From Blastocladiella emersonii ATCC 22665 (Eukaryota > Fungi > Blastocladiomycota), in assembly GCA_025594325.1 (NCBI GenBank), contig JANHCV010000012.1, positions 620,001-684,000 of the forward strand: 64,000 nt of DNA. Direction: 5' to 3'. Shown one piece after another: positions 7,923-43,520 of the stretch. Position 1 is the stretch's first letter. Every line of letters starts with the position of its first letter. The position numbers were made by a program, and so were the translations under genes. The notes under the pieces were generated by a model, which was not told the DNA's origin, ran no database searches, and saw only the letters and a list, made by a program, of their open reading frames with translations.

Positions 7923-9189
7923 TCAGATCCCCTTATCCAGGAACGCCTTGAGCGCCGGACCCAGCGAGTCCATGCCGCTGCCGTTCACCGGATAGGCCGC
8001 GGTGATGAGGATACGTTTGAGGACCGGGCGCAGCTCATTGTAGAGTGGAGTTGGGAACCGCGGGTCGACGTCGGGCAAGGGCTCGTGAAGGCGCAGGAAT
8101 TTGAGGTCGCGGAGAAAGAACGTGCTGGTGCACGCGATATCGTGTACCGACATCTGTTTCTCAAGCACTTTGACGCAGTCGGTGAAGATGCCGCTGAAAG
8201 TGATGTGCTCCTCTGATCAATCCGTGACGGAGCGCCTCGACCCAATCCATAAGCTCGGACTGCATGACCGACTCGGGAAGCCCGCGGCCGAGAAACAGGT
8301 CGAATGCGTCGGACGGAAGCGTGGTTGCATCGATGGCATAGTACGGAATGTTGTCGATCGAGAGCAAAAGGAAGGTTGGGTTGACAACGTGATCGATTTC
8401 CTACGTGAAAGCGCACGATTCAGCAAGGCATTCGAGATTGCAAGCGATGCGCGCAGACTCGACGCTCTTGAGCACACCGCGGTACTGCGTGCGAGCGCGT
8501 TCTATGGTCGCGGTCACCGAGGCCGAGAGACTCGGGTTTGCGAGAGGGTCAGCGGCACAAGCTGATTGGTGGTATTGTGCCCGTGCGTCCAGAAGCGCGT
8601 CGACGGACCATTCCACATCGAGCCAAGCACGCCAGCAGCGGCGGAGCTCGGCCTGCATTGCGACATCCATGACGCGGAGCGGCGAACCGGGTGAGGCGTT
8701 GACCCACTCCTTGTCGAGGCAGTCGCGTAGTTGACCATCCCAAATCTCACGCACCTTGGAGTCGAGAATCGTGGAGTACCAAAGCTGGCCAACGTTTCGA
8801 GTGAGCGTGTCCGTGTCGAGCGTATCAACCGAAGTATGAGCAAGTGCGTGGAGGATAAGCAAGTTTCGAGCGAGGAGTTCGGGCTGCCAGTCAATGAGCG
8901 TGAACGAGAGACTCGGCTCGGTACCCTTGGCCACCGCCTCGCACACGGTCCGAGCGACCTCGGCCAGGTCGCCGCAGCCGCACACGAGAGTAGCCAGCTC
9001 GGCCCGCGTGCACGATCCGTGCGAGAGGAGCAAGTCGCGCGGTGGGAGGTGCCGGAACGGGCGGTAGCCGGTGACACGATTCCCGCGGTACTGCATGCGG
9101 CACGTAAGGAGCGGCGGAACCGACGCATCTGATACGTCGAGCATAATAGCACTGTCGGATCTAATGCCAGCAGTTGCGGGCGGTTTCAT
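7923..9189 (-). pseudogene. DUF4470-like protein copy 1 (nonsense codon plus large internal deletion)
   Basis: LVCGCGDLAEVARTV...DWQPELLARNLLIL. TAG at 8401-8403 replaces the Gln seen in copy 2. The sequence then jumps from LRHGL directly to the C-terminal tail ending KAFLDKGI*. Confidence 0.8.
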
Positions 9190-9436
9190 GATGCTGCATA
9201 GGTAGGTGGTTTTACTGATGTTGAGAGCGGCGAAGACGAGACGGGATCTCCCCGACACGCGCGTGCGGGCAGGCGTGAGAGCCGGCGTCACGCGTCGCCG
9301 CCCGCACGTGTTGCGCCACTCACGTGATATCATAACGCGTCTCATCAGTTGTCTCCTGTGTCGGGAGCCCAGTCTTCATACATGAAAAGTACAAATTTGA
9401 GACAAAAGACCCAACTGACTAAAACGACAACATAAA

Positions 9437-9600
9437 TCAAGCGTCCTTGGTCAAAAGCGAACCCATCGCCGGACGCAGCGTGTCCATGCCGTTGCCGCAG
9501 ACTATGTATGCGGGAATAACGGGGCCACGCTTGAGAATCGGTCGTAGCGGCGAGTACAGGGAGTTCGAGCAATTGCAGCAACGGGCTTGTGCGCTTGCGC
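9437..9600 (-). pseudogene. Isolated copy of the DUF4470-family C-terminal tail
   Basis: LYSPLRPILKRGPVIPAYIVCGNGMDTLRPAMGSLLTKDA* aligns with YDILRPHLKRVLILPTYPVCGSGMDTLGPELKKFLAKGI*. Confidence 0.6.
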
Positions 9601-10039
9601 GGAAAATATCTCCAAAACTTGAGTCGCTCAACCTCGAGGACGCGGGCCTCACGAACTTCGTCTCGAGCGCGCCCGCGTCGGGCGCCAAGCTGTTCCCCGT
9701 AATCGAGTTGCTGGTCCCGGATTTCTGTCCGCTGCCGCCCGTAAAGCTCAATTCAAACGCGGGCTGAGACGTCCTCAAGATTACCGCAAGCCAGCGAGCG
9801 TGGATCGCTCCCAAGGCGCCCAATCTTCCAAAATAATGCGGTTCAGCGGGCGCGCAACCCTCACTCTCACATTCTCGTTTTGACGCAACTGCGGAGAGGC
9901 GAGACGCGATGCGCCACACCCGTGACTTTCAAACATGTCTCGCGCGTGAGTCAGGTGCTTGTGCTCATTCGATTAACACGATCGCATCAGGAGGTCTTAA
10001 GAACATGTAAATTCAGTGGAGTTCGTAACAGCAAGCTCG

Positions 10040-13000
10040 TCAAATCCCCTTGGCGAGGAACTTCTTGAGCTCCGGCCCAAGTGTGTCCATCCCGCTGCCG
10101 CACACGGGATACGTTGGCAGAATCAGGACCCGCTTGAGATGCGGCCGCAGGATATCGTAGTCAGCCGCGCTAACCCGAGAATCAGTCTCCGGGACCGGGC
10201 CTGGCAAGACCACAAAGTCAAAGAAATCAGCCAGAGCGACGTCCTCCAGTGGGAGGTTGCCCAACATCATGCGCGGGGCCAGTTTCGTCGCGGTCTCCGT
10301 CATTATCCTGCAGAGCGTATCTCCTTGCGATTGGGTGACGTCGTCACAAGAAATGCGGTTGAGGACCATGGTACACTCGAATGCTGGCGTTGGAATCGAT
10401 CCGGGACCAGACGACGGGAGGAACACGGCCCGGTCAACGAGAAGGAGAGCGGTGCTCGTGGAGTGAAGAACAAAGTGAGCCCGGTTCTTCCTGAGTCCAA
10501 ACGATTTGACAAGCATCTGAGTGAACTCGATGAGGCACGTAGCGAACGTCTTAGCCGCTAACGACGGATCCGAGTTGCGCGTGTTGACTCGTGCGCGGCG
10601 CCGTAGCGAGGCAAGTAGATCCGTGGCCGCGTGATCGGCCGCATGGATAGAATGCGAGAAGATTTGACTATCCTGCGGGACAAGGATACGGCGACCGACG
10701 TGTGGGCGAGAGGGCGGGAGCCCCAAATCGACATTGGCAGTTGTAAACCGCTTGAGGTCAACAACAAGGCGACATTGATTCCGATCGTCCTTGCCACGAG
10801 CCACTCGAACGGGTGACGTTAAGCGCATGGTCTGCTGAAGAGTATCGTCGATATAAATCGTCAAGGCTCCGCCATCGAATCTGAGCTCGAGACGCATTGA
10901 GGCGGGCACAGAACCAGATTTCAGCTTGAGGTGAACTCGAACCCATTCGAGGTCGTCCGAGACATGCTCAACTGCAAACGGCCACGTTCTCGGGTCCCCT
11001 GGACCTGAGTTCGGGAGTGGCGGTCGAGATTGGACAAGCGCCTTTGAGAGAAAGGTAAACGGGCTCGCAGCGGACCGAGCGATCGTGACCGATGGCGAGT
11101 TTAAGGGGAACAGCTTCCCCCCGACAAGCGTTCGCTCGGCATTGGGAGAGCCATGTCCAGGAGATTGTTCGCGGTAGACACCAATCATGGTGTGCGGTTT
11201 GAGTTCCGAGACCAACGCCAATGGGAGGTTGGCTTTGATGCGAATCTGCAGGGAGTCGCCGTGGATCTGCTCCACACAAAGGCTCTCGAGGCGGTAGGTT
11301 ACCTTGGGCAGGAGAAGTTCGACCACGAGATGAGCAGGGCGAAGTGAACACTTGCCATCCGATGAGACGAGAAATTCTATGCAGAAGAATGGGCGTCCCT
11401 CGATGTCGCAAAGCCCGTATGAGCGAAGGGGGAATGTGATCTCGCTCAATTCACCGATCACCTCGCTGGACGCCGAGGATAAGCCAAGTACGGACTGTTG
11501 GCATTCCGGCCAAGAGGTAGTGTCACTGGCCACTGTCTCCGAAACGGTGATACGTCCCGAAGCAAGCGCGAAGGCAAGCAATTTGGAGAGGAAGCTTCGA
11601 GTCGTGAACTTGGCGGCTATAGATTGGCGAGTGAGTTTTTTCGTCCCAGCTTCCAGCTCATGAGGATTAGAACCGTACCCATGTTCGGCGCCTTGGGTCG
11701 CGAAACGGCCGAGATACAGTCGGAGACCGCGCGTGTGATTATATCCGAGCTCACGAGCGACGTCGGCACTGTGGGGTGCAGCAGCTTGGTAAATGTCAAG
11801 TGCCGAATGGGGTGGTAATCGAGATAGTCTGCGCTCCATGCAAAGTGCTGAAACCACGTCCTTGGAACATCGGGACTCGGCCTTTCGGCGAGGACGACAC
11901 CAAAAAGTGCGGGATAAACTTCGTGTGAGAGCCCCGTCGCGCGAAGCAAGTAGGCCTCGTCGTCACCCGCGGTGTCGACACCCGTAGAGTACGCGAGCAG
12001 GCGTGCCGGGTCGTGGCCATCGTGCCTGTGGCGAAGCAGGACCGAGCCGTGGATAAGCATGCTGAGCAGGCCGCACGAATCCATGAGGTTATTCGTGTCG
12101 ACAACGTCGAAGCGCATTTTCGGATTGGCTGCCAGTTGTTCCATGACCGCGACAGCGTGACCATGCGCGAAAGAGAAGCGGACGCGCGGAGCACTTCCGC
12201 GGAGGCCGTCGCGCAGCGCTGTGACCCAGTTACTAATTTCGGCGAGCATGACTGACTCGGGAAGCCCGCGGCCGAGGAACAGGTCGAACGCGTCGGAAGG
12301 CAGCGAGCTTGCGTCGACAGCGTGATAAGGCCTATTGTCGTTCCCAATGAGGAGAAAGGTCGGATTGACAACAACCGAGGACGTTTGCGTGAACGCGCTC
12401 GACTCGGCGAGGCGTTCGAGGTTGCAAACCGTGCGCGCCGATTCGACGCCCTTGAGGACCCCACGGTACTGCGCGTGCATGCGGCCCATGAAGGCGGCTG
12501 CAGAAGCTGACGGGTTCCGGACTGCATTCGGGTCAGCAGCTGAAGTTGACGAACGATAGCTTGAACGCTCGTCCAACAAGGCCTCGATGGACCAATCGAC
12601 TACGAGCCAAGCTCGCCAGCAGCGAGAAAGCTCGAACTGCGTCGCATCGTTTGACAGGCGAAAAGCGCCACTGGGTGAGGCATTGAGCCAGATCTTCGCG
12701 ATACACTCGCGCAGTCGAGCATTCCAGAACTCGCGCGCACTCAAATCGAGCACCGCAGAGTACCAGAGCTGTCCAACGTATCGAGCAAGTGTTTGTGAAT
12801 CGACCAAGTCCGCAGGAGTTGAGGAAATTGCATGAAGAATGAGCAAGTTTCGCGCGAGGACTTCGGGCTGCCAGTCGTTGAGCACAAATGAGAGCGTCGT
12901 GGTAGCACCCTTGGCCGCGGTTTCGCAAACGGTTCGTGCAACTTCGGCCAAGTCGCCACAGCCGCAAACGAGCGCATCGAGCTCGGACCGCGCGCGCGCA

Positions 13001-13254
13001 TCGTGGTGGAGAAACAAGTCCCGCGGCGGTAGATGGCGAAACGGGCGAAAGCGTTCGACACGGTCCCCTCGATACAACGTCCGGCAAACCAGAGTGATGG
13101 GCATCGAGTTGGCGGGTCGTTCAACGACTTTCAAGCCGGTAAGCACAGGCGAGCGCGCAACCTTGCTCGCCTCGTCACGCCTAGTCATAGCAGCAAGAGT
13201 CGTGGCTTCATTGCCGCCAGTTGCGGGTTTATTCATTTTCTTTTTCGCCTTCAT
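10040..13254 (-). CDS. DUF4470-like domain protein copy 2, intact, about 1050 aa (intron 11617-11678)
   Basis: ATG at 13254 (MKAKKK). Motifs CGCGDL, DWQPEVLARNLLIL and FDVVDTNNLMDSCGLL. A phase-1 GTACGG...TATAG intron joins the two long ORFs with exon lengths 1576+1577 nt. Confidence 0.8.
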
Positions 13255-13383
13255 AGTTGCCAGTTGAGGAGCGTGAGAACCGGCGCGACGCGTTCGAGAT
13301 CTCGATCCGGCGCCGAACAGCTGCGGTCGCGTGACCTGTGGCGCAACGCGTCGCGATCGATCACTGTGCCCCAGCACAAAAGT

Positions 13384-13443
13384 TTGGTTTGCGATCAGGG
13401 GCTAAAGCCCGCGCCACGCTGATTCGATTGCACTGTAGGTGCT
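13384..13443 (-). mobile_element. Relic terminus related to the right end of the 54.6-58.7 kb Pif1 element
   Basis: TTTGGTTTgcgATCagGGGCTAAAGCCCgCGCCACG...AGGTGCTG matches the reverse complement of 58613-58674 (TTTGGTTTtcaATCgaGGGCTAAAGCCCcCGCCACG...AGGTGCTG). Confidence 0.65.
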
Positions 13444-13639
13444 GACTCGAGCCACGACGCAATAATCATCAAAGCCCATTCAGACGACGACACCGTCTCA
13501 GTTCAAGCCGCTAGCGCCCCTCGGAACTCACACTGACAACTTAGCCTGGTGCTGTTGGGCGAGTTGTGGGGGACCGCTAGGGTTGGCGACCGCTCATTTT
13601 CCGGGCAAGGCACACTGAAATGCTCTGGTAAGCGAGAGT

Positions 13640-14591
13640 TCATGACGATAACTCAGGATGCAGAGGAGTAGCATTGGAACGGGCCAGGAAGAAGCTGGGA
13701 TGATCCAGCAACCTGTTGTGTGCCAAGCAAGTCGGTGGCGCGCGGACCATGCTCATCTGTATGGCGAAAGAGAGCTGATCCATGATGTTCCATGATCGTG
13801 ACGGCGTGGACGTGAAACAAAGTATGACGAACGCGTTGGTTGGTGCAGCGCAAGCAGCAAGCGAGACCCGGCTGCAAATTTCCGACACCATGAACGACAC
13901 TTGAGGCCGGTAACTAAGGACAAAATCAAATGCCTTTGAAGGAAGCGCAAGAGGATCGGCGGATCGACGGCATGGTACAAAACGCTTTCGTTCGAGATGC
14001 ATAAGAGTGTTGGATTGGCGACAGCATTGGGCTCTTGGACAAACGCCCCCGTCGAGAGGAAGCGAGCGCGGTTTCACGGTCCCCTGAGTTGAAGCACGCC
14101 GGGGCACTCCAGAGTACTGCCCGTCGATCTGCTCCATGAACTTTGTCGCGCAAGTCGAGAAGTGGGCATAGGGTGCTGTAGGTAGCAGGAACGTCATGGC
14201 GGATCCGTTTTGTCCACTCTCACATCATAGCATAGGGGGTAGCTCCAAGCTCACAAAAATCTTCATGTAAGCTTCGCACCTCTACAGAAGGGTTTTGACG
14301 GACCCAGTCAACGTCGAGCCAGGCGCGCCAGCAGCGGCAGAGTTCGCGAAGCAGCGTTTTGTTCCGGGCAGAAAGCGGCGAGGTCGCTCAAGTTCTGGGC
14401 CAAATCCTTGTCATGAAATGCGCGCAGCTGACCGTTTCAAAATTCGCGTACACTCGAATCAAGCAAATTCGAGTACAAGAGCTGGCCGACGCAACAAGCA
14501 AGCGTGCGAATCGGGCTTGTTTCACGGGGTTCGGGAGATGGCGTGGAGTATGAGCAAGTTGCGAGCAAGAAATTTGGGCTGCCAGTTGTTG

Positions 14592-14625
<34 letters not shown>

Positions 14626-14890
14626 TACTTCGCGGTGGCCCCCCTTGACCGCAGCTTCGCACACTGCGCGCGCGACTTCGGCCAGGTCGCCGCAGCCGCA
14701 CACAAATGCGTCCAACTCGACGCTCGTTTGAGAGTAACGTTTCGTGCAGAGGCAACTGTCGGAACGGGAAGAGGGCCTGAAGCGGTCGCTTGTGATTGGT
14801 GCGCGACATGCCAAGAGCGGCGGGAGCGAGGCCGGGGCTGTCGCGTCGAGGGGAGAGCGAACAGTTTGAGCTGTGCGTGCGATGCGCATC
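13640..14890 (-). pseudogene. DUF4470-like protein copy 3, heavily degraded
   Basis: Fragments FVCGCGDLAEVARAVCE, WQPKFLARNLL, YHAVD, LPSKAFDF and HAVTIMEH/HGSALFRH occur in different frames. It abuts the left inverted-repeat arm. Confidence 0.75.
14595..14622 (+). repeat. A28 homopolymer inside DUF4470 copy 3
   Basis: 28 consecutive A where copy 2 has ACAAAT-like sequence after GTTGAGC. Confidence 0.9.
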
Positions 14891-15061
14891 GATAGTTTAA
14901 GAAGCAGGGCTGTATTTTGTTTGAACATCCACTCCTCCTCACACTCCTCTGCTAAGTCGTCGCGGGTCGGTACACTCGAGTTGCACACACACTAACAATC
15001 ACACAAGAACACACTCAAAACGGCAATCACACTCTTAGAAGTCGGCCACGAAGCCACGTAA

Positions 15062-15484
15062 TTACTGGCGGACCCAGGTCTTGGACTTGGTGGGGATCGG
15101 GGCCACGTCCGACTGGGCGCCCGAGGCGCTGACGAGCTTGCACCCGCCGAGCACCGACACGTTCATGTCCTTGGACTTGGACGGGCACGACCAGGTCTGC
15201 GAGATGGTCCACGACGGGTTCATCCAGTAGCTGACTGTCAGGCCGTCGGTCTTGGGGTCGTACGACCACTCGCCGTGGCCGCGAACGGCGACGCACGGCA
15301 TGGGGTTGCAGGGCAGGGTCGACATGACGGTGAGCTTGCCGGTGGCCTCGAACGTGGCCTTGTGCGTGTTGGTCACCTGGTACGTGGCCGGGACGGGGAA
15401 CGGCGCGTCGAAGATCGGGGGCGGGATGGCCGAGACCATGGCGACAAGGGCCAGGACGAGGACAACGAGAGCGGCGGCGTTCAT
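15062..15484 (-). CDS. Small secreted protein, 140 aa (copy 1)
   Basis: Signal peptide MNAAALVVLVLALVAMVSA, four Cys, strong C/G-ending codon bias, and a TATAAA box at 15570-15575 (minus strand). Confidence 0.85.
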   Translation of the reverse strand: MNAAALVVLVLALVAMVSAIPPPIFDAPFPVPATYQVTNTHKATFEATGKLTVMSTLPCNPMPCVAVRGHGEWSYDPKTDGLTVSYWMNPSWTISQTWSCPSKSKDMNVSVLGGCKLVSASGAQSDVAPIPTKSKTWVRQ

Positions 15485-15569
15485 GGTTGGTGGAATAAGA
15501 GCTTGGGTGTCGGGCGGAAGGCTGACTGGTGAGGATTATCTGGATGGAGGGCGGGGGAGCCGGCCGGTC

Positions 15570-15575
15570 TTTATA
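15570..15575 (-). promoter_or_regulatory. TATA box of secreted-protein copy 1 (mirror copy at 28493-28498, +)
   Basis: CTATAAAGA lies about 85-90 nt upstream of the ATG, in otherwise GC-rich DNA. Confidence 0.65.
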
Positions 15576-16316
15576 GTCTCGCGCTCCCGCCCACCTCGAG
15601 TTGGCTTCGGTTGCGCTTGAACGTGTTCGGCGCGTCGCGGCGGCAAAGGCTGGCATGATCAATGCGACGCAAGCCCGAGCAAGCAACTGTGAGCCGCAGC
15701 GGCTGCATCAAACGGTCTCGATTTGGCGACGTTGGGACTGCTCCTCGCGACGCGAATTAAGTCAACCTGGAGTTCACTGGATCCGGTGCCCGGGAGCGAG
15801 CGGTGGCGCAGCACGCGCGCACGCGCTCGAGTTTCAGACCAAGTCCTCGCCGGGCACTTTCCTGCGTGCTCCACGCCCAACTCTGAACAAATTTGGGAAG
15901 CCAATATGCAGCTTGAGTTTGAGCCGTGTGGTGGACCTTTCGGGGCGGCTCAAATGGGAAATCGAGACGTTGAATGCCATAGAGCAAGAACGATTGCATT
16001 TCGTGGGTCGGGTTCTCGCTTGCGGGTGAGCTGATGGGACGGAACTGGCAGGTGGCAAGTGGCGCAGTCGAATGCACTTGCAGTTAATTATCGCGTGGCG
16101 GGCCTCCGGAAAAGCTCAACTGGGTGATCGCTCGTGACGCGCTTCGCCGCGCTACTTTGAGGAACGCTCATGAGCTTTGATACGGCCGACCCGAGCGGAT
16201 GACCGCCATGGATTTTGTCTCGAGCAAGAAACCTGGACGACAACGTATGCCGTTTCCAATGCAGGGGCGGGGATAGACGGTGTGTGACGGCCACGTCGGT
16301 CGCAAGGTAAAAATCG

Positions 16317-17620
16317 TGGCCGAGAGAACGGGTAGTGTCTGTAACGTGGTCAGAGCTGCCGCGAGGTAGACGTTCTTTGAGTGTGGATGGGTGCAAAGTT
16401 CAATACACCCTCCACCGGTTGCCTAAGCCCCGGATGATAACTGCGACGACGACATCACGACAATTTAGCGGACATCCTTTTGCCACTTTCGCCGGCTCGT
16501 GCATTGCGTTGCACCGACTGGTCCGACTCCGCCGGCAGTTTTTGTGAGGGTTTGACGATAACAATCTCCAGCAAAACGCGTCGCCAACGGAGGTGCGAGG
16601 CGTGGGTGCGAGACACGGATGCGAGACGCGTTCTGAAATCAGCTGATCGCGGACACTGGCCAATCTACGTTCGCGCCCACTCTGCTGATCGCAACCCGCG
16701 ACGAGACCACGCGTGATGCACAAACACACTCACCAACGAAATGCGGACGTAATCCGCCGCGGACGTTAGCGCTCTTTAACCCATGCAGCTGACTCGGGAA
16801 TCAAGTGGACCAGTCACCACCAGCGCCGTGTTCCATCCCACGGTGCTTCTCATCAACTGGTCGTGTGTGCCACGTCGCTCGCCCGGTCCAACGGGATGCG
16901 TAACGTCATCGTGGTCGCGGCCAGAAACGGGACCTCGCGCGGGGTGTGTCTCGTGCGCTGCCGTACGAGCTGTTCAAAATTTTAAAAGCAACCGAAATAA
17001 CCCGATGACCACCTTGGACGTTGTCTCGAGCCACGACGCATTAATCATCGAGGGCAACTTGGACGACGTCGGGCCAGTCTAGACCGGGAGCACGCCCCGC
17101 AACCCGGCACTCAGTGATGGCAGCCAACTGCAGAGTCGTCAAGTGGTGGCGACGCGACCTGAATGCGACCGCCCGAGCTCGTGCACTCAGCTTCAGGAAG
17201 CCTGGACGACAAAGCAAGACGTGGGATTAGTGGGAGGGGAGGGAAACAGCGTACTACGGCAACGCCGGCCGTGAGGCCATGGGCGTGGCCGAGAGCATGG
17301 AGGGTGTCTGCAACGTGGTCCGAGCTGCTCGAGTGGTAAGCCAACCTTGTGCGTGTAAGGGGTCGAAGTCCAGTGTTCGACACTCCCACCGGTTAGACTA
17401 CGCCCTGGGCTGGCGCCGACGATTACACGACAGCGCAGCAGACACCTTTTGCCACTCTTGCTGGATCGCGAATTTCGTTGCACCGATTGTTACATTTTCT
17501 CAGGCGCCTTTTCTGGAGAGTTTGCGAGTACTTATTCCAGCGAAACGCGTCGTTGACGTGGGCGCGTGGGTGCGAGACACGGGTGCGAGACGCGTCGCGA
17601 AATCACCTGATCGCGGACGC
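16317..17620 (+). repeat. Two diverged direct copies of a unit of about 340 bp (16317-16655 and 17285-17619); mirrored in the right arm
   Basis: Shared blocks GTGGCCGAGAG, GTGTCTG(T/C)AACGTGGTC, CACCGGTT, TTTTGCCACT and GCGTGGGTGCGAGACACGG(A/G)TGCGAGACGCGT...TGATCGCGGAC recur with a period of about 965 bp. Confidence 0.75.
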
Positions 17621-17873
17621 CGCGCGGCTGGCGCGACGCGTCGACGAAGCACGCCGCCCGCAGCGACTGCTGCCTCTTCGAGCCGTCCATCAACCCCCTT
17701 GACGCGGGCATGCAACCTGGCGCATTCGACCTCGACCGACATCATCCATGCCCTCCTGCAGTTCCGGCGTCCTCGTCAACGTTCTCGTGCGGACTGGCGG
17801 GACTCTGGCGGCCGCGGCAGGCCCGTCGTCTGCGACCCCAGCTCGTGGGTCTTCCACAGTGCTTCTCCCGTGG

Positions 17874-18575
17874 ATGCCCGACGCGACGCACTACGCGGCT
17901 CAAGGCCCGCTTTCCGGCCTGCACACATACCCGAATCTCGCCCTCCTCGTGAGCCTGCCGCCGCCGTCGCCGTCGGACGACGCATCGCAGATCCTGCTTG
18001 AGCTGTGCAATCAGTCGCACAAGATATTCTACGTCGTGCTCCGCGGGCAGCAGCAGGAGGACGCGCCGTCACTGGTCCTCGCCGAGTTCATCTTCAACCC
18101 GCTCATCAACGGCAAGCTTGTCGAGCTCGGCGCCCTCGCGTGCGCGCGCGCCGACTTCCCGCTCCGGCTCGAGTGGCGGCACGCCCACCTGCTGTCGGAC
18201 GTGGGCGGCGGCGGCGCTCATGTCATCGACGACGAGGACCCGGCCGGGTTCTGCGAGATCGGGCTGCGCGACGAGGTGTCGGACGCCATCTGGCTCCGCG
18301 AGTTCTACGGCTTGCAGTCCCGCGCGCTGCTCCCGACCGCCGCCGCCGCCACCGCCACCGCCACCGCTATGTCGGGCCCGGAGATGGCCACCGCGTCCTC
18401 GCCCAAGCTGCGGCACAAGTTCAAGGGGCTCATCTTCACCCAAAACTATGGGAACCGGGCGAGACCCGTCGTCGCGAAGCCGCACGAGCCGGCCCGGCGG
18501 CAGCCGGACAAGAAGGAGCGCAAGCTCATGATGGCCGCTCTCGGCACGGCCGCCGCGACGAGTCCTGCAGTGTAA
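17874..18575 (+). CDS. Hypothetical protein (spacer orphan; paralog at 25927-26360)
   Basis: Coding-like codons. FPLRLEWRHAHLLSDVGGGGAHVIDDEDP...LREFYGLQ is conserved with the inverted paralog. The start could be 17748. Confidence 0.7.
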   Translation: MPDATHYAAQGPLSGLHTYPNLALLVSLPPPSPSDDASQILLELCNQSHKIFYVVLRGQQQEDAPSLVLAEFIFNPLINGKLVELGALACARADFPLRLEWRHAHLLSDVGGGGAHVIDDEDPAGFCEIGLRDEVSDAIWLREFYGLQSRALLPTAAAATATATAMSGPEMATASSPKLRHKFKGLIFTQNYGNRARPVVAKPHEPARRQPDKKERKLMMAALGTAAATSPAV

Positions 18576-19930
18576 CAGTCGCGGTGGCCGGGGCGGTTGG
18601 TTCGGCAGCTTGCGCGGCTGCAGCGTTGTATGAAAGATGATCGCCCGTTGAGAGAGCGCGCGCGCAATACATCCATCAGTCTACCCGAGCCCCAGTTCCT
18701 GCCCGCGAGGCCGCGACCGGTCGGTCGCCGTGGCCAGTTTCTCTGCGGCACGCGTTCGGGGAAAATGTCAGCGGACTTATCTCTGCGAGTCGCTCGTCGC
18801 GCCCTTCCCCTCTCTCTCCCCCTGCTCATCTTCGAACGGCCGAACTTGACTGCAATGAACACTCGCAATGAGCACGCTTACCAGGAGAAGCACGAGGGAC
18901 TGGACTGCGCCGACCGCAGCAAACCACGCTCGCTCTCGCTCGGGCCGTCGCGCCGTGCCCCTCTCATCACGACGCCGCCGGGGCCCCGCTGCTCGTCCCG
19001 CCGGGCCGTCGCACCGCCGCACGGATGCGCCTGTGCCGCTCCGCTCCGTGAAGTGTTGCTGTTGCCGCCGCCATGCGCTGTCAGGCAGAAACTCGTCCGC
19101 GCGCCTCCCTGAGCCTCACACTCGTTCGCTCGCCTTGCGGGACGTACGAATCCCCCCTCACCAAGCGCTGGACGGTCCGCGCGCGGCGCGCAACGGAGAA
19201 GAAGACTCGCCGTGCGCGCGTCGATTCGCAAGGGCGACGGACCGGTCGCGCTGTCCATCTCGTAATTGCCTTCCTCGTCAACGTCCCGGTCCTCGACGTG
19301 GAGCGGACGCCGGGGATCTCGCACACCACGGTCACGGCCATGTCAACGCTGCGGCCATCCTGGTACAGCAAGGCGCGGACAGGAGGCGTCGGTCCGCTGA
19401 GGCTCGGCGCGTCGACAGTAGTCCCGCACTCGATACCGGACCGCGTCCCTTCTGCTCGGGCAGGGGAGCTGGCTCGGGCGCGACGAGCCGAAGCAGCCGC
19501 GGCGACGGCGGTGCTCGTCGGTCGGGCGGATCGCCGCGACCATGTGTGGTTCCCGCCACTCAACGCGCGGAACAGCGCGCCTAGTACACGAAATACATCC
19601 CCCCTCGGCTGTGATACCGCCTCAGATACGCGCAAGTGGATGGGTCTTCTCGCTCTTGCCGCCCTCGCTCGCCACCGCCCGAGCAGAACAGTAAGGTCGC
19701 CGCCGACCTTGGTCGCCGCTGCCGCGCCACCAGTGCCACTCTCTCCGCCCACTTGCGACCCACGGAACCATGAAGCCCGCTGCCTCCAGCACTCTCTGCA
19801 ACACGATCGGCGCCACGCATGCACTGCACACCCCCGCCCAGAACGCGAGCGTGCACCGTCTCCGTGGTCGCGGCGGCTGACGTCGGCCAGCGCGGAAGGG
19901 ACGGCCGCCCCGCCCTCTTTTCGCCGCCTT

Positions 19931-19960
19931 GACTTGACTTGACTTGACTCGACTCGACTC
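19931..19960 (+). repeat. (GACTT)3(GACTC)3 pentamer microsatellite
   Basis: Read directly from the sequence. Confidence 0.85.
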
Positions 19961-20528
19961 GGAGAAACGCTCGAGCGGTGCGTCCGTGTCCCCTGCTGCT
20001 CGCGGCGCCCGCGGCCACCGTGATGTCCACGCGCGGGAGGGACCGGCCTGACCCTTTGCGGAGTTTGATAGACCTCTCCATGGCCGCTCGTGCGCACCGG
20101 TCCGATCCCGATGCCGCTCCACACCGACACGCGGTTCGCCCCGCGAGCCCGGCCTGGGTGCTCGCCCGCGCGCTGCCGCGACCGCGGCCAGGCGGGGCAT
20201 GCGCAGTAGCTTCAGCCACTGTTCCCATCGTCGATTGTCAAATAGTTCAATGGTTCTCTCCTCGTCGCCCCGCAAACCGCCCGTTGTGCACGATCCGAGT
20301 CAAGATCGCGGGCTTCAGACGAACGCGCGGTTCAGATCACGCGCGCGCGGGTGACGCGTTGCGCCGCGGCTTTTGAACGCGTCGGTCGGCGCGGCCCATC
20401 TCGCCCCGATCCGTCCTCTCTCCCCTCCCCCTCCACCACGGACCCCCACCTCACCGCTCCACCTCAAGCGGCAGCAGCTCCGGCAGCTGCGCGCACACAC
20501 ACGCCCAAACAACACAGCCCCCGCTGTC

Positions 20529-21949
20529 ATGGATCCGGTACGCCCGCGCGCGCCGTCCGAGCGCGGTGATGTGCTGCGTGATAACCGACACTGATGATGC
20601 GCGCACGCCGCGCGTGTGTAGCCGGCGCCCGCGCACGACCCGCGCGCGCACCCGGTAGCGCCCGTGGGGCCGCTGGCCGACCCCGCCGCGGACCCGACGG
20701 CGGCGAGCGGCGCCCTCGCTCCCGCGCCCGCCGAGCCCTTTTCGGCCCCCGCATCCGCCGACGACTGCGTGCGCACACACGCCAACGCAACACATCCCGC
20801 CGCCCTCGATCCGGTACGCCCGCCCCGCCTGCGCCGCCCGCCCGCGCGGTGTGATGTGTCGCGTGATGATCGACACTGATGGCCCACAAACACATCGTGT
20901 GTGTGTAGACGACGCCCGCGCAGCACGCGTACCCGCATTCGGCGATCATGGAGACGGCCGCCGATCCCGCGGCGGTTCCCGCGCGGCACGATGCCCTCGC
21001 GCGCGCGTCGGCCGAGCCGTTCATGGTTCCGGCGACTACGCCCGAACCTGCCGTGATCGCGGCGATGCCGCCCATCACGCCCGCGCTCGGCGAGGACCCG
21101 GTCTCCGCGGTCGCACACGTATCCGCGCCGACGGCCGCGCAGAACGCGCCCGCGCACCCGGCGGCGTTCATCGAGACGGCGGCAGAGCTCCCCGCGCTCC
21201 CCGCAACCGCGCCGGCGCCCGCGTTCATCGTTGACCCGGTCCCGGCGGTGCGGCAGCTGCTCGTGCCCGGCCGCTACCCGAGGTCGTCGGTCATCAACGA
21301 CCTCCTGATAACGGCGCTCGTCCTGCTGCGCGTATCGCCGATTGCCGACCTGCCCGCGCCGACGGCGTACTACCTCGCGGACGCGTACAGGTTGGCCATG
21401 GTGTTTGTCCGCACGGGCCACCCGGCCGACTTTGACGAGACGCAGCGCGCCATCGACAACCTGCGCGACCACGTCCGCAACGACACGACCGCGTCGCTGC
21501 CCGTGGATGGCCTGTTCCACGGATGCCAGCTGCTCGCGCTCGCGGTCCTCGGGTACCTGATCGCCACGGCCGAGAAGGACGGCGCAGACGACGACCAGGA
21601 CGACAACGAGGAGGCCGAGCGGGAGGCCGCCGCCCTCGTCCGCGCTGCGGTCGCCGCGGCCGTTGCCGCGCTCGCCCAGGAGGAGGGCGCCGCCTCGGTC
21701 GACGACGCCGTGATCGCCCTGCGCGAGGCGCTCGCCATGGCCGACGTGCGCGTGGGGCTGGGCGAGGCCGACGTGCTCCAGCTCGCGGCCGCGGGCAAGC
21801 GGCGCGCCTGCGCCGAGGTGATGCGCATCCAGCAGCAGCTCTCGACGCCGCCCGGCGACTGCACGGAAGCGGATCGTGAGGAGCTCATCGCGATGCTCGA
21901 CGCGATCCACGCCGTCCACAACGACCCGACGCGCGGTGCCGCCAAGCAG

Positions 21950-21989
<40 letters not shown>

Positions 21990-22807
21990 GGGACGCGCGG
22001 GACGGGCGGCGGCCGCCGCTGCTCCACCTGTGGAAGGGCAAGGGCAAGGTGACGCAGCAGCCGCCGGCGCCGTCGCAGCAGCCGAAGCCGAAGCGCGCTG
22101 CGCAGAAGCAGCAGCGGCGGCGCGAGAAGCAGCTCGGCAAGTCCCCGGCGGCGGCGGCGGTCGCGGCCGAGATCACGGGCATCGTCAAGACGGCCGACGT
22201 GCCCCCGCGGCCGGGCAAGTCCAAGGAGGCCAAGGAGGCCAAGGAGGCCCTCAAGGCGGCCAAAAAGGCCGAGAAGAAGGCCGAGAAGAAGGCCGAGAAG
22301 AAGGCCGCCAAGCTGGCCGCCAGGCTGGCCATGCGGCTCGACCCGGCCAACGCGGTGGCGACGTCGGTCTCGCTGGTGCACGCCGTCTACCTGTTCGAGC
22401 TCGGGCACACGAACCTGCAGCTGCACGCGGCGGGCGTCAAGCAGGCGGCCGAGTACTCGGCGATGCAGAAGCTGTACGGGTGCATCGCGCGCCCCGACGA
22501 GCTCATGCGGCGTGCGGCGGCGCGCGCAGCTGCCGCGGCGGCCGGCACGCCCGAGCCCAAGCCCGACCCGGAGCAGCAGTTCTGCGAGGCGCTCCGGCAC
22601 GGCTACGACGTCGACGGGGCCGCCGTGGCGCGGCTGCTGGGCCCCGCGGGCGGCATCGCCATGCTCGGGCGCCGCGTGGTCCACTCGCTGGGCGTGCTGC
22701 TCGAGCTGTACCGCGGCGAGCTGTTCCGCGAGCCCGACGTGGTGCCGGCGGTGCACGAGGAGAACGAGGAGAACGAGGAGGAGGACGCGGCCGCGGAGCA
22801 ACAGCAA

Positions 22808-22842
<35 letters not shown>

Positions 22843-23643
22843 GGAGGGCGAGGCGGTGGAAGAGGTGGAGGTGGAGGTGGAGCGGGCCCCGATCACACTG
22901 GTCTGGGACGGCGACAATCTCGGCGCCACAGCAGGCCAGCTCGACTTTATCGAGCAGCTCGGGACGGTCGACGTCGACATTTTCGGCAACGGCGAGGGCA
23001 AGCTGCGGGTACGTTTTCGGCTGGTGCCGGCCGATCGAGTTCTCGCTCACTGACTTCCCCGTGCGCTGTCTAGTGGAGGAAGGTGCTCAAGAAGCCGCGG
23101 CGCGGCGTCGAGTGGCACCGGTGTCATGACGTGCTGAAAGAAGCCGCCGACCACGACGCGCTCAAGTTCATTTACGACGACCGCGAGGCGCTGTGCGCGC
23201 AGCCCCGCCCGCGCGTCGCCGTGCTCGTGTCCGCCGACAACTCGTTCGAGGTGATCGAGAACGAGGCGTACGAGCGGTTCGGGCTCGCCGGCATCGACAT
23301 GGCCGCGGACGGGAGCGGGTGCTGGATCCTGCACGTCCGCACGCCGGTCGGGGCGATCCTCGCGGTGACGTGGGCCGCCATGTGCGTGACGGGCAGCGGC
23401 GGGCCGGTGGACCAGGTCGACGCCCTGCTCGCGTACCAGCCCGCGCCCGACGAGGACGAGGAGAGCGAGAACGACGAGGACGACGAGGACGGAGGGTCCG
23501 AGGACGCCATGGCCGTGGACTCGAGCGATTTCGATTTCGATTTCGAATACGACGAGGACAGGGAGTCCGGCGCGGGCGCCGCCGTCGACGACGCTGACGA
23601 TGCCGCATCCTCGGGGCCGCAGCTCGCGCAGACGACCGAGTAG
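20529..23643 (+). CDS. Large Ala/Pro-rich, poly-Gln hypothetical protein (introns 20538-20621, 20814-20908, 23009-23073)
   Basis: Three GTACG...CACTGA(T/C)...TAG introns are all phase 0 and join exons in frame with ORFs 20948 and 23083. Poly-Q tracts near 21950 and 22800, KKAE repeats and an acidic C-terminus. Confidence 0.7.
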
Positions 23644-23894
23644 GCGGTTTGGACGTGAAGATGAATGGATCCGTGTGCGTTTGTCAAGGTGTTGCTTCTT
23701 CGACTGATGCGGCGAAGCGAGGCGAGGGAGGCGAGGGGAAAGTCGAGGATCGGCGCGGTCAGCTGATATGAGCACACGCGACCGGCCGCGTTCCCACGGC
23801 GCGTCGGCCGGCCGCGGCGGGCCCGTCCTCCCTCGGCCAAAGATTGCCTCGCCCGAGAGCTACAATGTGCTGCCGATCAACTATCCGCACTACC

Positions 23895-25566
23895 ATGCAT
23901 CGCACCTCGCCCAACCAAGAGCCTCCTCGCTCGCCGCGGCAGCCGTCGCCAGCGCCCCCGCCGCTCACGGCCGCCGCCTCGCTCACCTCGGACACGGCGG
24001 GCAGACCCGCGACGCCTGTGACAGCCCCTTCTGCTGCTGCTGCTGCGTCGACGCTCACGCCAATGTCCGCGCCCGAGCAGCTGCTGCCGGCCCAACAGGT
24101 CCCCGCCGCTTCCAGCCCGGCGACTGCGGGCGCCACCAGCCCGAAGCGCAAGAAGCACAAGAAGAACCACCCGCCCCGCGACGCCGCCACGTCCCCCGGG
24201 CCGCCCGGCGCCCGCCCTGCGCCAGCAAAGTCGCCGGCGCGTACGCCAGCAAAGTCGCCGCCGCGTGTGCGCCCGAGCGGCCCCAAGAGTCCTACCCGGG
24301 CGAAAATCGCGCCTGTGCCGTGGTTGCTTCCCCCGCTCTTGCCCTCGCTTCCGCTTCCGCTGTCCGCGTTGCAGTTCCAGTTTCCGCCGCACGACCGATT
24401 CTCCTGCGCTGCGCGCCGCGACCTGACCTTCCTCGCCGTGCAACGCGCTTTGGCCCTCAACGGCGCTCCGGCCCACGTTCGCGATGTCAAGGAATCGACC
24501 GATCCCGACGTCGTCGCTGCCCTCGCTGCGGGCGACAAGGAGCTGGCCGACTTTCTGGTCCTCGCGTACGTGCCACTCCGCGGTTGAGCTCCACCACGGT
24601 TCGCGCACCGTTCTAACCCGGTGCTGCCACCCCCGCCGCTGTAGTCGCGACGCCGGCATCGACCCGACGCCACTCCTTCCTACTTTGAAGTGGTTCTCGA
24701 CCCCCGCCACCGGCGGCGTCTGCCCGCTTCGCTTCCCGCTCCAGAACACGAACCTGTCCCGCCTCGCCAAGCTGTACGCGGCTCGCGATCCACCGTCCAC
24801 GATCCGCATGTACATTGCCGACGACAAGTGGACCAAACCGACCGCCGCCGTGCTCATGAACCCGCTGAGGCCCGGCGCGCGCTGGGCGTACGACGCCATC
24901 GTCACGATGCGCAACCCCACCTTTGCGCGCGACCACGGGCTCGAGGTCTTTGATCCGGCCGCTGCCGCCGCCAGCACCGCGAGCGGTACGGCCGGGCGTC
25001 ACCGCGTCCGCTTCCAGCTCCTGCCGCCCGCCGTCGACCCGTGGCGCCCGATGCGCGTCAACGGCGGCGGGTTCGGCCTCTCAGCCGTGTACGCCGAGCA
25101 TGCCACGACGATCGCGTCGATGCAGGCGGCACAGGCCATCAAGCTCGGGCGCCCGTACCCGCACCCGCACCCGCAGCACCACCAGGGCCACGTGGGGTAC
25201 GCGCCGCGCGGCTTCGGCGGCAAGGCGTTCAACGAGCGCGGCGGGTACAAGAACACGGTCCAGATTCTGGCGGACTCGACGTCAACGTCGGCCTCGTCGG
25301 TCGCGAGTGCTGGCGGGCTCCAGTCGGCGTCGTCGTCCTCAAGCGCGGGCGCGGGCGCCAGCGCTGGCGAGGTCCAGCTGTCGCCGCCGTCGGCTCCCTC
25401 CACGCCACCGCCGTCCATCACGCTGATCATCACCTCGGACGTGATGGCAGGCGTGGAGAACGTGCTGCAGTTCATGCACGGCCGTGCGGACCAGGTGGTG
25501 CTGGCGACCGAGTGGGATAGCGAGTTTGCCGTGTGGGACGCGTTCTTCCGCACCGCGTGGCCGTGA
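23895..25566 (+). CDS. Hypothetical protein with Pro/Ala-rich N-terminus (intron 24566-24644)
   Basis: ATG at 23895. A GTACGT...CTAAC...TGTAG phase-2 intron joins ORF 23844 to ORF 24484 in frame. Basic patch KRKKHKK. Confidence 0.7.
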
Positions 25567-25926
25567 TGCTCAATGAATAATCGATTTCTAGTCGCTCTGA
25601 TTGACCGGGTGCGGCAATAAGATCATTTCACAATGTGTCTCACCCGCCTGGTCCCGCGGGAGCGAGCGGCGAGAGAGGAAGGCTGCGGCGACGTGGTCGA
25701 CGACGTGTCCGGGTTGTTTGCACACGATCGTGTGCCGCGGAGAAGCGGGCCAGCTGGCCACGGCGACCAGTCGCGGCCTCGCGAGCAGGACCTGGGGCTC
25801 GGTTCGACTATTATGTATTGCGCGCGCTCCTCGACGGTCAATCAATCATCGTACACACAAAACTACTTCCGAGCGGCCTGCCGCCGGTCAGCGACTGCTG
25901 CAGCTGCACCCGAGCACTTCGCTCGT

Positions 25927-26360
25927 TCACTCGGCGGCCGTGGTAGCGCCCGTCAGCTCGGCCAGCGACACCCGGGTCGACTCGTGCGGCGCTGCGACGA
26001 CGGGCTTCATGCGGTCCTCGTAGTCCTGGTAGAAGACGAGCCCCTTGAACTCGTGCCGCGGGTTCGGCGAGGAAGCGGCGACCGCCTGCGGGCCCGGCGT
26101 GGCGGCAGCGGCGGCGGTGGCGGTCGGGAGCGGCGCGCAGGCCTGCAGGCCGTAGAACTCGCGGATCCAGAGCACGTCCGACACCTCGTCGCGCAGCCCA
26201 ACCTGGCTGAACGCGACCGGCTCCTCGTCGTCGATGACGTGGGCGCCGCCGCAGCCGATATCCGACAGCACATGGGCGCGCCGCCACTCGAGACGAAGCG
26301 GGAAGTCGGCACGCGCGTCGGCGAACGCGCCGAGCTCGACGACCTTGCCCTTGAGCAGGG
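25927..26360 (-). pseudogene. 5'-truncated paralog of the 17874 gene
   Basis: VELGAFADARADFPLRLEWRRAHVLSDIGCGGAHVIDDEEP...IREFYGLQ. An in-frame TGA lies just upstream and the N-terminal ~70 codons are missing. Confidence 0.7.
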
Positions 26361-26446
26361 TTCAGGGACCATGCGAGGAAGCAACAAGGCGGAGGGATCG
26401 TCGCCGAAGGCTGCCGGCGAACGCGCGTTGAGGACGCGCCGCACGT

Positions 26447-29169
26447 GGCGTCCGCGATCAGGTGATTTCGCGACGCGTCTCGCACCCGTGTCTCGCACCC
26501 ACGCGCCCACGTCAACGACGCGTTTCGCTGGAATAAGTACTCGCAAACTCTCCAGAAAAGGCGCCTGAGAAAATGTAACAATCGGTGCAACGAAATTCGC
26601 GATCCAGCAAGAGTGGCAAAAGGTGTCTGCTGCGCTGTCGTGTAATCGTCGGCGCCAGCCCAGGGCGTAGTCTAACCGGTGGGAGTGTCGAACACTGGAC
26701 TTCGACCCCTTACACGCACAAGGTTGGCTTACCACTCGAGCAGCTCGGACCACGTTGCAGACACCCTCCATGCTCTCGGCCACGCCCATGGCCTCACGGC
26801 CGGCGTTGCCGTAGTACGCTGTTTCCCTCCCCTCCCACTAATCCCACGTCTTGCTTTGTCGTCCAGGCTTCCTGAAGCTGAGTGCACGAGCTCGGGCGGT
26901 CGCATTCAGGTCGCGTCGCCACCACTTGACGACTCTGCAGTTGGCTGCCATCACTGAGTGCCGGGTTGCGGGGCGTGCTCCCGGTCTAGACTGGCCCGAC
27001 GTCGTCCAAGTTGCCCTCGATGATTAATGCGTCGTGGCTCGAGACAACGTCCAAGGTGGTCATCGGGTTATTTCGGTTGCTTTTAAAATTTTGAACAGCT
27101 CGTACGGCAGCGCACGAGACACACCCCGCGCGAGGTCCCGTTTCTGGCCGCGACCACGATGACGTTACGCATCCCGTTGGACCGGGCGAGCGACGTGGCA
27201 CACACGACCAGTTGATGAGAAGCACCGTGGGATGGAACACGGCGCTGGTGGTGACTGGTCCACTTGATTCCCGAGTCAGCTGCATGGGTTAAAGAGCGCT
27301 AACGTCCGCGGCGGATTACGTCCGCATTTCGTTGGTGAGTGTGTTTGTGCATCACGCGTGGTCTCGTCGCGGGTTGCGATCAGCAGAGTGGGCGCGAACG
27401 TAGATTGGCCAGTGTCCGCGATCAGCTGATTTCAGAACGCGTCTCGCATCCGTGTCTCGCACCCACGCCTCGCACCTCCGTTGGCGACGCGTTTTGCTGG
27501 AGATTGTTATCGTCAAACCCTCACAAAAACTGCCGGCGGAGTCGGACCAGTCGGTGCAACGCAATGCACGAGCCGGCGAAAGTGGCAAAAGGATGTCCGC
27601 TAAATTGTCGTGATGTCGTCGTCGCAGTTATCATCCGGGGCTTAGGCAACCGGTGGAGGGTGTATTGAACTTTGCACCCATCCACACTCAAAGAACGTCT
27701 ACCTCGCGGCAGCTCTGACCACGTTACAGACACTACCCGTTCTCTCGGCCACGATTTTTACCTTGCGACCGACGTGGCCGTCACACACCGTCTATCCCCG
27801 CCCCTGCATTGGAAACGGCATACGTTGTCGTCCAGGTTTCTTGCTCGAGACAAAATCCATGGCGGTCATCCGCTCGGGTCGGCCGTATCAAAGCTCATGA
27901 GCGTTCCTCAAAGTAGCGCGGCGAAGCGCGTCACGAGCGATCACCCAGTTGAGCTTTTCCGGAGGCCCGCCACGCGATAATTAACTGCAAGTGCATTCGA
28001 CTGCGCCACTTGCCACCTGCCAGTTCCGTCCCATCAGCTCACCCGCAAGCGAGAACCCGACCCACGAAATGCAATCGTTCTTGCTCTATGGCATTCAACG
28101 TCTCGATTTCCCATTTGAGCCGCCCCGAAAGGTCCACCACACGGCTCAAACTCAAGCTGCATATTGGCTTCCCAAATTTGTTCAGAGTTGGGCGTGGAGC
28201 ACGCAGGAAAGTGCCCGGCGAGGACTTGGTCTGAAACTCGAGCGCGTGCGCGCGTGCTGCGCCACCGCTCGCTCCCGGGCACCGGATCCAGTGAACTCCA
28301 GGTTGACTTAATTCGCGTCGCGAGGAGCAGTCCCAACGTCGCCAAATCGAGACCGTTTGATGCAGCCGCTGCGGCTCACAGTTGCTTGCTCGGGCTTGCG
28401 TCGCATTGATCATGCCAGCCTTTGCCGCCGCGACGCGCCGAACACGTTCAAGCGCAACCGAAGCCAACTCGAGGTGGGCGGGAGCGCGAGACTATAAAGA
28501 CCGGCCGGCTCCCCCGCCCTCCATCCAGATAATCCTCACCAGTCAGCCTTCCGCCCGACACCCAAGCTCTTATTCCACCAACCATGAACGCCGCCGCTCT
28601 CGTTGTCCTCGTCCTGGCCCTTGTCGCCATGGTCTCGGCCATCCCGCCCCCGATCTTCGACGCGCCGTTCCCCGTCCCGGCCACGTACCAGGTGACCAAC
28701 ACGCACAAGGCCACGTTCGAGGCCACCGGCAAGCTCACCGTCATGTCGACCCTGCCCTGCAACCCCATGCCGTGCGTCGCCGTTCGCGGCCACGGCGAGT
28801 GGTCGTACGACCCCAAGACCGACGGCCTGACAGTCAGCTACTGGATGAACCCGTCGTGGACCATCTCGCAGACCTGGTCGTGCCCGTCCAAGTCCAAGGA
28901 CATGAACGTGTCGGTGCTCGGCGGGTGCAAGCTCGTCAGCGCCTCGGGCGCCCAGTCGGACGTGGCCCCGATCCCCACCAAGTCCAAGACCTGGGTCCGC
29001 CAGTAATTACGTGGCTTCGTGGCCGACTTCTAAGAGTGTGATTGCCGTTTTGAGTGTGTTCTTGTGTGATTGTTAGTGTGTGTGCAACTCGAGTGTACCG
29101 ACCCGCGACGACTTAGCAGAGGAGTGTGAGGAGGAGTGGATGTTCAAACAAAATACAGCCCTGCTTCTT
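26447..29169. repeat. Right arm (2,723 bp) of the large inverted repeat
   Basis: Reverse complement of 14899-17621. Confidence 0.95.
28584..29006 (+). CDS. Small secreted protein, 140 aa (copy 2, identical translation)
   Basis: Mirror of 15062-15484. TATAAA at 28493-28498 and a GT-rich 3' UTR. Confidence 0.85.
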   Translation: MNAAALVVLVLALVAMVSAIPPPIFDAPFPVPATYQVTNTHKATFEATGKLTVMSTLPCNPMPCVAVRGHGEWSYDPKTDGLTVSYWMNPSWTISQTWSCPSKSKDMNVSVLGGCKLVSASGAQSDVAPIPTKSKTWVRQ

Positions 29170-29536
29170 GAGCCATCGATGCACAAATCTTGTGAGATGA
29201 AATTCCTCGGGGCGTGCAGGTCTTTAACGGAACCCGACTTTGATAGAGGACTGGATAATGGCGCTCAAGAAGCGGTGCCCGTCCTGCGCGGTAAGCTGGG
29301 TCACAAACCTGCGTAGGGACCTTCTCGGCGTCGATTTGTACTCCTATGAGGCAAATCACACCCCTTCGTCCTGATCGACCGAAGCGAGAAGGACCGCGAC
29401 AACGCGCGTCTCGAGGACGCGACGAGAAATCATGTGACGGTTCACGTCACATGGCGTCACTCGCGGCTTGCTCTTCCCCTCTCAAACCTGTTGTGGCATT
29501 CTGGTCGGCCGCTCTCCATCGACGACCGCTCTCACC

Positions 29537-39977: not shown

Positions 39978-40805
39978 GTGGTGAGGCGAGCGAGGCGATG
40001 CGGAAATGTATGACGGTTGAGTATGAGCTTGGAAACTGGTTCGGGGCTGCGGAGGGGCGAGCCAGCGCGAGAAGCTTTACGGGTGAAGTAGGGCCGACAC
40101 GCTTTATGGCTCAAACTGATCCACCACGGCGGCCATCTGTGAGGTTTGCGCGTGCGCGGACGACGGCCAGGACCTCGCGATAGCGCCCCAAGGAACAGGC
40201 TACGTCGCCGCTGCGGGCGCCGCGCTCAGCAGCGCTCCGCCATGCATCGCGCTTGCTCTTGCAGCACTCGGCGCGCGTAAGGGATGGGCCAAGCTGCGAC
40301 CAAGCTGCTGGTACAGTAGCTGAGAGACTTTCTTGCCAGGGTCGCTTAGTAGCTGTCGTCACGGAAGCGTCGCTCGCTGCTTTGGGCTGAGCTGATCTTC
40401 GGAGCTGACAAAGTGTTTCGCTCGGTGCTCCCACCGGCTAAAACTGTTTCATCTACATCTATACGCCAGATATAATGACCTTCGTCCGAAGAGCGACCAC
40501 GAAGGCCGCGCAACCAATCGAGCGCGTCGCGTCGCTCTCCCCAGCCATATCCAGGCAAGCTCTTCGATGGAGAGGGCTTTGTATGAACTCGGTTATCCCA
40601 CGGCTGCACGGCAGCTCAGCGGCATTGCGAAGCTCCTGGAGACAGCGGGAGGCAGGGGCAGAGACGCGTTGCGATATCATGTGAGGCTCACGCGAGCGGT
40701 GATTCAGGTTCTGATCAAGCCGCTTGCGGCTCACTGGCGGCAGAACCCCTGCTGGCGGTCGTCGCTCCTCCGTAAACCACTACCATCAAGCGAAAACCGG
40801 CTACC

Positions 40806-43448: not shown

Positions 43449-43520
43449 ACTCTCGTTTCAACTCTGCCGTCAAGCGGCTGCAATCGCGTGCACCGCCGCC
43501 GCTCTCCTGCCAACCACTCC

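Follow-up and report, generated by a model that had tools for sequence, protein, structure and literature searches.

A palindromic duplication with identical 2.7-kb gene-bearing arms in Blastocladiella emersonii, probably homogenised by arm-to-arm recombination

We analysed a palindromic locus in the zoosporic fungus Blastocladiella emersonii ATCC 22665, which lies in a stretch of 64,000 nucleotides (nt) of assembly GCA_025594325.1 (JANHCV010000012.1, 620001-684000). This whole stretch is referred to as the window, and positions are those of the window unless another locus is named. Two inverted arms, each carrying a gene for a small secreted-type protein, enclose a spacer of 8.8 kb that is occupied by orphan genes. 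The contig is 1,455,090 bp long; the assembly was made with the La Jolla Assembler from 605,547 PacBio high-fidelity (HiFi) reads with a mean length of 10.5 kb (~186x), and was afterwards purged of duplicates and polished by Pilon with 65-nt Illumina reads (PMC9730499). The text of the genome paper contains neither 'inverted' nor 'palindrom' (PMC9730499). All comparisons made at the locus are based on this one assembly of one strain. The read evidence comes from four DNA runs of one source sample, which were used in the form of Logan (de Bruijn) contigs over 14000-19999, and the run of 2022 (X2) was taken as the probable HiFi run.

The left arm (14899-17621) and the right arm (26447-29169) are perfect reverse complements of each other, with 0 mismatches over 2,723 nt in a base-by-base comparison, and the gap between them is 8,825 nt. 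A perfect inverted match of 2.7 kb cannot arise by chance. An earlier note on this DNA had claimed identical mirror arms of 2.72 kb, and the full alignment returns the same limits and 0/2,723 differences. A repeat search gives wider limits (14883-17624 and 26444-29185), because its extension runs through a 16-nt diverged edge. The guanine-plus-cytosine (GC) content is 0.60 in the arm (0.67 in the coding sequence and 0.59 upstream of it) compared to 0.70 in the spacer. In run X2, the word depths of the arm contigs are 293, 283, 284, and 290 (range 282-293), while those outside the arms are 161, 153, and 154 in the left flank and 145.5 in the spacer contig (17592-19999). The arm depth is thus 1.9-2.0x that of flank and spacer, and therefore both arms exist; it is this depth that establishes the right arm as a second copy. 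In an Illumina-type run, the ratio of arm to spacer depth is even larger, and we ascribe the excess to GC bias disfavouring the spacer (70% GC). In three runs, the contigs end exactly at 14899-14928 and 17592-17621, as would be predicted for a repeat in two copies, and both junctions of the left arm are bridged by contigs in three libraries. No alternative letters were found within the arm in any of the four runs, and a single 1-nt deletion appears in part of a low-coverage run.

Each arm reads outward and consists of 2,137 nt of upstream sequence, an open reading frame (ORF) of 140 amino acids, and 163 nt after it, in agreement with the layout proposed earlier (about 2.1 kb upstream, a coding sequence, and about 160 bp). 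The gene is annotated with a single exon; its left copy lies at 15062-15484 on the minus strand and its identical right copy at 28584-29006 on the plus strand. The encoded protein has a hydrophobic, signal-peptide-like N-terminus and four invariant cysteines. A protein search finds five further paralogs, all of them in B. emersonii. Compared to the closest paralog, the ratio of nonsynonymous to synonymous divergence (dN/dS) is 0.3, with a dS of 0.17 in the coding sequence. The protein has no Pfam family and no fold match in the PDB. Its predicted structure is beta-rich, with a predicted local distance difference test score (pLDDT) of 64 and a predicted template modelling score (pTM) of 0.58, and the model matches one uncharacterised protein in AlphaFold DB (E 2e-6, template modelling (TM) score 0.60, 29% identity). 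An Atlas search with the same protein gives a lipocalin-like lead, which is weak.

The identity block is bracketed by diverged homology on both sides, so that the residual similarity reported in the earlier note can now be given exact limits. Outward, 14883-14898 matches 29170-29185 at 12/16 positions, and this short segment, which would be the unconverted edge of an old duplication, can also be aligned to two paralogous loci on the same contig (L001 and L004, described below). A comparison of the left flank, the right flank, L001, and L004 past the outer edge shows nothing above chance, except for the pairing of L001 with L004. Inward, identity collapses at 17622. The left side then has a segment (17622-18098, plus strand) of which about 400-480 nt are without a counterpart, the right side having ~90 nt in this place. 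This left-only segment codes for the N-terminal part of the left inner gene and forms the heterology at which the identity block ends. Homology then resumes at 18099-18827 (plus strand), which is 73% identical to 26359-25660. This segment contains most of a gene of 233 amino acids, and its counterpart at 25660-26359 (minus strand) contains the conserved part of a gene of 153 amino acids. Over the inner homology of about 720 nt, the identity is 77-87% both for the first 360 nt and in the coding part, and 60-80% to about 18813, after which there is noise.

The two inner genes are annotated at 17874-18575 on the plus strand (233 amino acids) and at 25927-26789 on the minus strand (153 amino acids), the latter lacking the N-terminal part of the left copy. 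Their products are 63% identical, with a dS of 0.28 and a dN of 0.19. No further relative of this pair was found among 5.8 billion proteins, and therefore the pair arose by duplication at this locus. Neither the left-only segment nor the spacer core has a homolog elsewhere in the window or at the paralogous loci used for comparison, apart from GC-rich low-complexity noise.

The unique, single-copy core of the spacer (18828-25659, plus strand) has a depth of 145.5 as far as 19999 and carries two annotated genes, both on the plus strand, which encode proteins of 956 amino acids (20529-23643) and 455 amino acids (23895-25566). The large ORF of the first gene (20948-23053) has only four distant relatives in the protein search, all of them B. 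emersonii proteins, and the second gene has no relative in that search. Within the large ORF, a module of ~120 amino acids (residues 471-605) is common to several other B. emersonii proteins, residues 55-206 are similar to a B. emersonii protein annotated as an endopolyphosphatase, and there are poly-Q and K/A-rich low-complexity runs. Among 19 ORFs from the arms, spacer, and flanks, Pfam families were detected only in the flanks (OTCase and DUF4470), and a search of Rfam likewise gave nothing for the arms and spacer. None of the ORFs in the 14-30 kb region matches a tyrosine or serine recombinase family, Pfam detects no transposase in the arm, spacer, and flank ORFs, and no direct repeat that could be a target-site duplication flanks the ends of the cassette. 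The Pfam results and the end sequences agree with the earlier view that transposase, recombinase, and target-site duplication are lacking, and the description of the spacer as a set of orphan genes holds as well, given that its genes are without Pfam families and have relatives only in B. emersonii or none.

The closest paralog of the 140-amino-acid gene lies at L001, 164 kb away on the same contig. The homology of L001 with the arm covers 26411-27114 and 27836-29195 at 75-83% identity, essentially the whole arm, and L004 matches the arm over 28120-29195; the two loci lie at about 470 kb and 194 kb of JANHCV010000012.1, respectively. L001 and L004 also have in common a 4-kb segment (L001 7537-11550 and L004 7526-11536; 81% identical), which includes a member of the 140-amino-acid family and continues through a Vma12 gene into its downstream sequence. 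Because L001 and L004 share the Vma12 side, the ancestral context is the unit together with Vma12, and the arm unit is derived. A tree of the 1-kb region that all three have in common (region B) has the topology ((arm, L001), L004), with 57 lineage-specific changes each on the arm and L001 branches. Between arm and L001, region B has diverged by 13% and region A by 25%, which is comparable in magnitude to the divergence of the inner paralogs. The arm unit is therefore derived from an L001-like donor by a copying event whose age corresponds to roughly 13% divergence, and the segment common to L001 and L004 shows that the 140-amino-acid family spreads by ordinary segmental duplication.

The arm also contains a diverged direct repeat of ~430 nt, at 16225-16654 and 17194-17618 in the left arm (69.5% identical) and mirrored at 26450-26874 and 27414-27843 in the right arm. 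Its final copy ends at the inner arm edge and begins with a conserved motif of ~55 nt; L001 has a single copy of the repeat. The motif, with the core TTTCGCGACGCGTCTCGCA (E2F/MCB-like CGCG boxes), marks the start of every intra-arm repeat copy and also lies at the inner edge of the arm. Its sites are 17564-17618, 16600-16654, 26450-26504, and 27414-27468, as well as 6650-6710 of L001, and its conservation is 91% compared to about 69% in the surroundings. A partial copy lies 20 kb away at 48758-48781. The motif may be a promoter element. In addition, contigs of the low-coverage run X4 run from the arm into a loxP-like linker, ATAACTTCGTATA, at 16865 and 17065; these ends are most likely an artefact of a Cre-lox mate-pair library and not biology.

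In our view, the locus is probably an old inverted duplication of local origin, in which homologous recombination recently copied the outer 2,723 nt of one arm onto the other. Homology with 15-27% divergence lies on either side of the identical tract, and an old duplication followed by recent copying is the simplest account of this. The contrast is sharp, with 0/2,723 differences between the arms and a dS of 0.28 in the adjoining inner pair. The tract also ends where recombination is expected to stop, which is near the end of homology on the outside and at a large heterology on the inside. From these sequence relationships, we infer that conversion caused the identity of the arms. In such a history, a unit of ~2-2.7 kb with the 140-amino-acid gene would have been copied from the paralogous locus 164 kb away, and an inverted duplication would have given arms of about 3.5-3.9 kb each, consisting of the unit and the adjacent orphan gene. 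The inner part of the duplication would then have diverged freely, while in the outer 2,723 nt one arm would have overwritten the other non-reciprocally, by gene conversion or break-induced copying. The converted tract would have stopped 16 nt before the outer end of homology and, on the inside, at the insertion/deletion of ~400-480 nt. If the same recombination involved crossing-over, the 8.8-kb spacer could be inverted passively, at a low rate and with no regulated switch. The earlier note had likewise favoured an old inverted duplication in which recurrent recombination between the arms maintains their identity, and this part of its interpretation is well supported by the diverged homology on both sides and the dS of 0.28.

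Several points weigh against this explanation. Run X3, which has low coverage and composition bias, shows no clear 2x signal for the arms. Concerted evolution is read here from strata within the locus in one strain and not from a phylogeny of arms, and a single recent re-duplication primed by homology would give the same picture. No GC-biased substitution was found on the arm lineage, where 21 weak-to-strong (W>S) and 27 strong-to-weak (S>W) changes were counted. Finally, the homologies of arm to arm, arm to L001, and arm to L004 all end within about 10 nt of one another, at 29182-29185 and at the mirror position 14883, so that the palindrome's outer edge and the breakpoint of the earlier donor-to-window copy fall at one place. 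This coincidence is not predicted by a plain two-step history; it could stem from one complex event, from an intermediate in the form of an inverted dimer, or from a hotspot of breakage.

An unlikely alternative to duplication followed by conversion is that the 2.72-kb unit alone was recently duplicated in inverted orientation and came by chance to lie beside the second member of an older inverted gene pair, so that the arms are identical because they are young and no conversion took place. The absence of any difference between the arms is consistent with this, and so is the fact that the unit is a discrete module with the same two end points in the arms and in L001. However, the new copy would have had to land at the mirror position and in mirror orientation, within about 100-500 nt of the old paralog, with no homology to guide it, and the diverged homology outside the outer edge (12/16) would not be expected at a fresh boundary.

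Regulated inversion of the 8.8-kb spacer that alters the expression of the orphan genes, a functional flip-flop as in the mating-type systems of Ogataea and Komagataella, seems to us very improbable. Perfect 2.7-kb inverted repeats with 8.8 kb between them can well serve as a substrate for inversion, and in Ogataea the mating-type (MAT) flip/flop relies on inverted repeats that enclose a region of 19 kb (PMC5720833), but the Pfam search reveals no recombinase, mating-type, or regulatory domain in the arm and spacer ORFs. Because the arms are identical, a flip leaves at least 2.7 kb beside each spacer end unchanged, and low-GC, pseudogene-like stretches flank the locus to the left and to the right. 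The HiFi contig of 1.46 Mb is also unbroken through the locus, and, judged from the behaviour of assemblers, this suggests that a single orientation prevailed in the culture that was sequenced. Flipping the spacer between identical arms would generate no new words shorter than an arm, and no Logan contig bridges an arm. Occasional flipping of the spacer is plausible, and a switch function is unsupported; this also applies to the flip-flop half of the earlier interpretation, in which inversion would exchange the orphan genes turned towards the accessory and the core side.

We also give very little credence to a mobile element, whether a 14.3-kb transposon with terminal inverted repeats of 2.7 kb or a composite of two mobile 2-kb units around captured genes. 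The arms are terminal and inverted and share two end points with the copy at L001, as such an element would predict. Against this, neither a transposase or other Pfam domain nor a target-site duplication was found, the read depth indicates one copy of the spacer and exactly two of the arm, and the donor locus shows an ordinary segmental duplication with L004. In addition, the homology of the arms continues inward past the unit at far lower identity, which is unlike the end of a transposon. A false arm, or small real differences between the arms that were erased by Pilon, is very unlikely and the least probable of these explanations: the 65-nt Illumina polishing reads are unable to distinguish the arms, but the arms have 1.9-2.0x depth in the 2022 run, no run contains alternative letters, and HiFi reads of the length and coverage used here (mean 10.5 kb, ~186x) span a 2.7-kb repeat.

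The left flank (7923-14890) contains a tandem triplet of DUF4470-like genes on the minus strand, the third copy of which (13785-14829) survives as a frameshifted relic with about 40% identity to copy 2. We rejected the idea that the arm truncates this copy. The homology of copies 1 and 3 both begins at residue 91 of copy 2, and therefore the edge is a tandem-repeat boundary. In all four runs, a segment of ~60 nt inside the degenerate copy 3 (14172-14232) has a word depth 8-12 times the single-copy level and is continued by many different sequences at either end. It resembles a short repeat present in many copies, and may be the terminus of a transposon. On the right side of the locus, low-GC sequence at 40643-48081 contains three diverged tandem copies with 62-65% identity and a period of about 2.7-3.0 kb; their ORFs have no Pfam matches. 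Pseudogene-like, low-GC DNA is therefore not confined to the left side. The division into an accessory left and a core right side, as drawn in the earlier note, applies only locally, since low-GC, pseudogene-like stretches are also present on the right (40-50 kb, GC 0.55-0.59).

Taken alone, the locus is a known kind of structure, a palindromic segmental duplication that is small and ordinary. Its closest documented analogue is the flip/flop region of Saccharomyces chromosome XIV, where gene-bearing inverted repeats of 4 kb are continually homogenised (Salzberg et al. 2022, PMC9731477), and where the orientation is stable on laboratory timescales and changes over evolutionary time (PMC9731477). 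Both loci have near-identical, gene-bearing inverted repeats of a few kb (4 there and 2.7 here) with no dedicated recombinase, and in both, the repeat genes come from a fast-evolving, often-duplicating, lineage-restricted family. The spacers are of different sizes, with 8.8 kb and four orphan genes in B. emersonii compared to 24 kb and 15 genes in Saccharomyces. Unlike in B. emersonii, the two orientations of the Saccharomyces region are both documented across strains and species, and its homogenisation is shown by phylogeny (PMC9731477).

Arm-to-arm gene conversion has been described for the palindromes of the human and ape Y chromosomes (Rozen et al. 2003, as cited in PMC5490193), and palindromes are also found in the asexual animals Folsomia candida and Adineta vaga (PMC5490193). 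The locus in B. emersonii resembles these palindromes in having inverted, gene-bearing arms at or near 100% identity, a unique spacer, sharp boundaries, and conversion as the proposed cause. Unlike the Y-chromosome palindromes, whose arms range from about 9 kb to 1.45 Mb, it has much shorter arms, its chromosome is not known as a sex chromosome, and conversion is deduced from within the locus. In Ogataea polymorpha and Komagataella phaffii, homologous recombination between inverted repeats inverts the MAT region (19 kb in Ogataea), and the system involves MAT genes, centromeric or telomeric silencing of one end, and induction by starvation (PMC5720833). By contrast, the locus in B. emersonii has no MAT or regulatory domains and no known silencing boundary, and only the inverted-repeat substrate is seen. 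In Candida albicans, it has been documented experimentally that long inverted repeats drive rearrangement (Todd et al. 2019, PMC6591007). The likeness is that long repeat pairs in a mostly clonal fungus are substrates for recombination, inversions included; here the substrate alone is seen. With respect to the known classes of invertible loci, the kilobase-size inverted repeats that flank the spacer agree with the flip/flop class, and the recombinase gene that marks the site-specific class (FLP/FRT of the 2-micron plasmid and bacterial invertases) was not found among the ORFs of the 14-30 kb region.

No sexual cycle is known in B. emersonii. It is conceivable, although doubtful, that the locus is one of a genome-wide set of gene-bearing palindromes that would be kept identical by intrachromosomal conversion, as proposed for Y chromosomes and some asexual animals. 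In this locus, old and converted strata would adjoin, and the spacer would occur in both orientations within cultures. If such a set is real, the coincidence at the outer edge would point to a specific mechanism of palindrome formation, for example inverted-dimer integration, and not to ordinary segmental duplication. Because the identical tract is bracketed by old, diverged homology, copy-correction from arm to arm can be argued from a single genome. If the palindrome set is confirmed genome-wide, B. emersonii, with its 34-Mb genome, would be a tractable system for the study of palindrome birth, conversion, and inversion in an early-diverging fungus.

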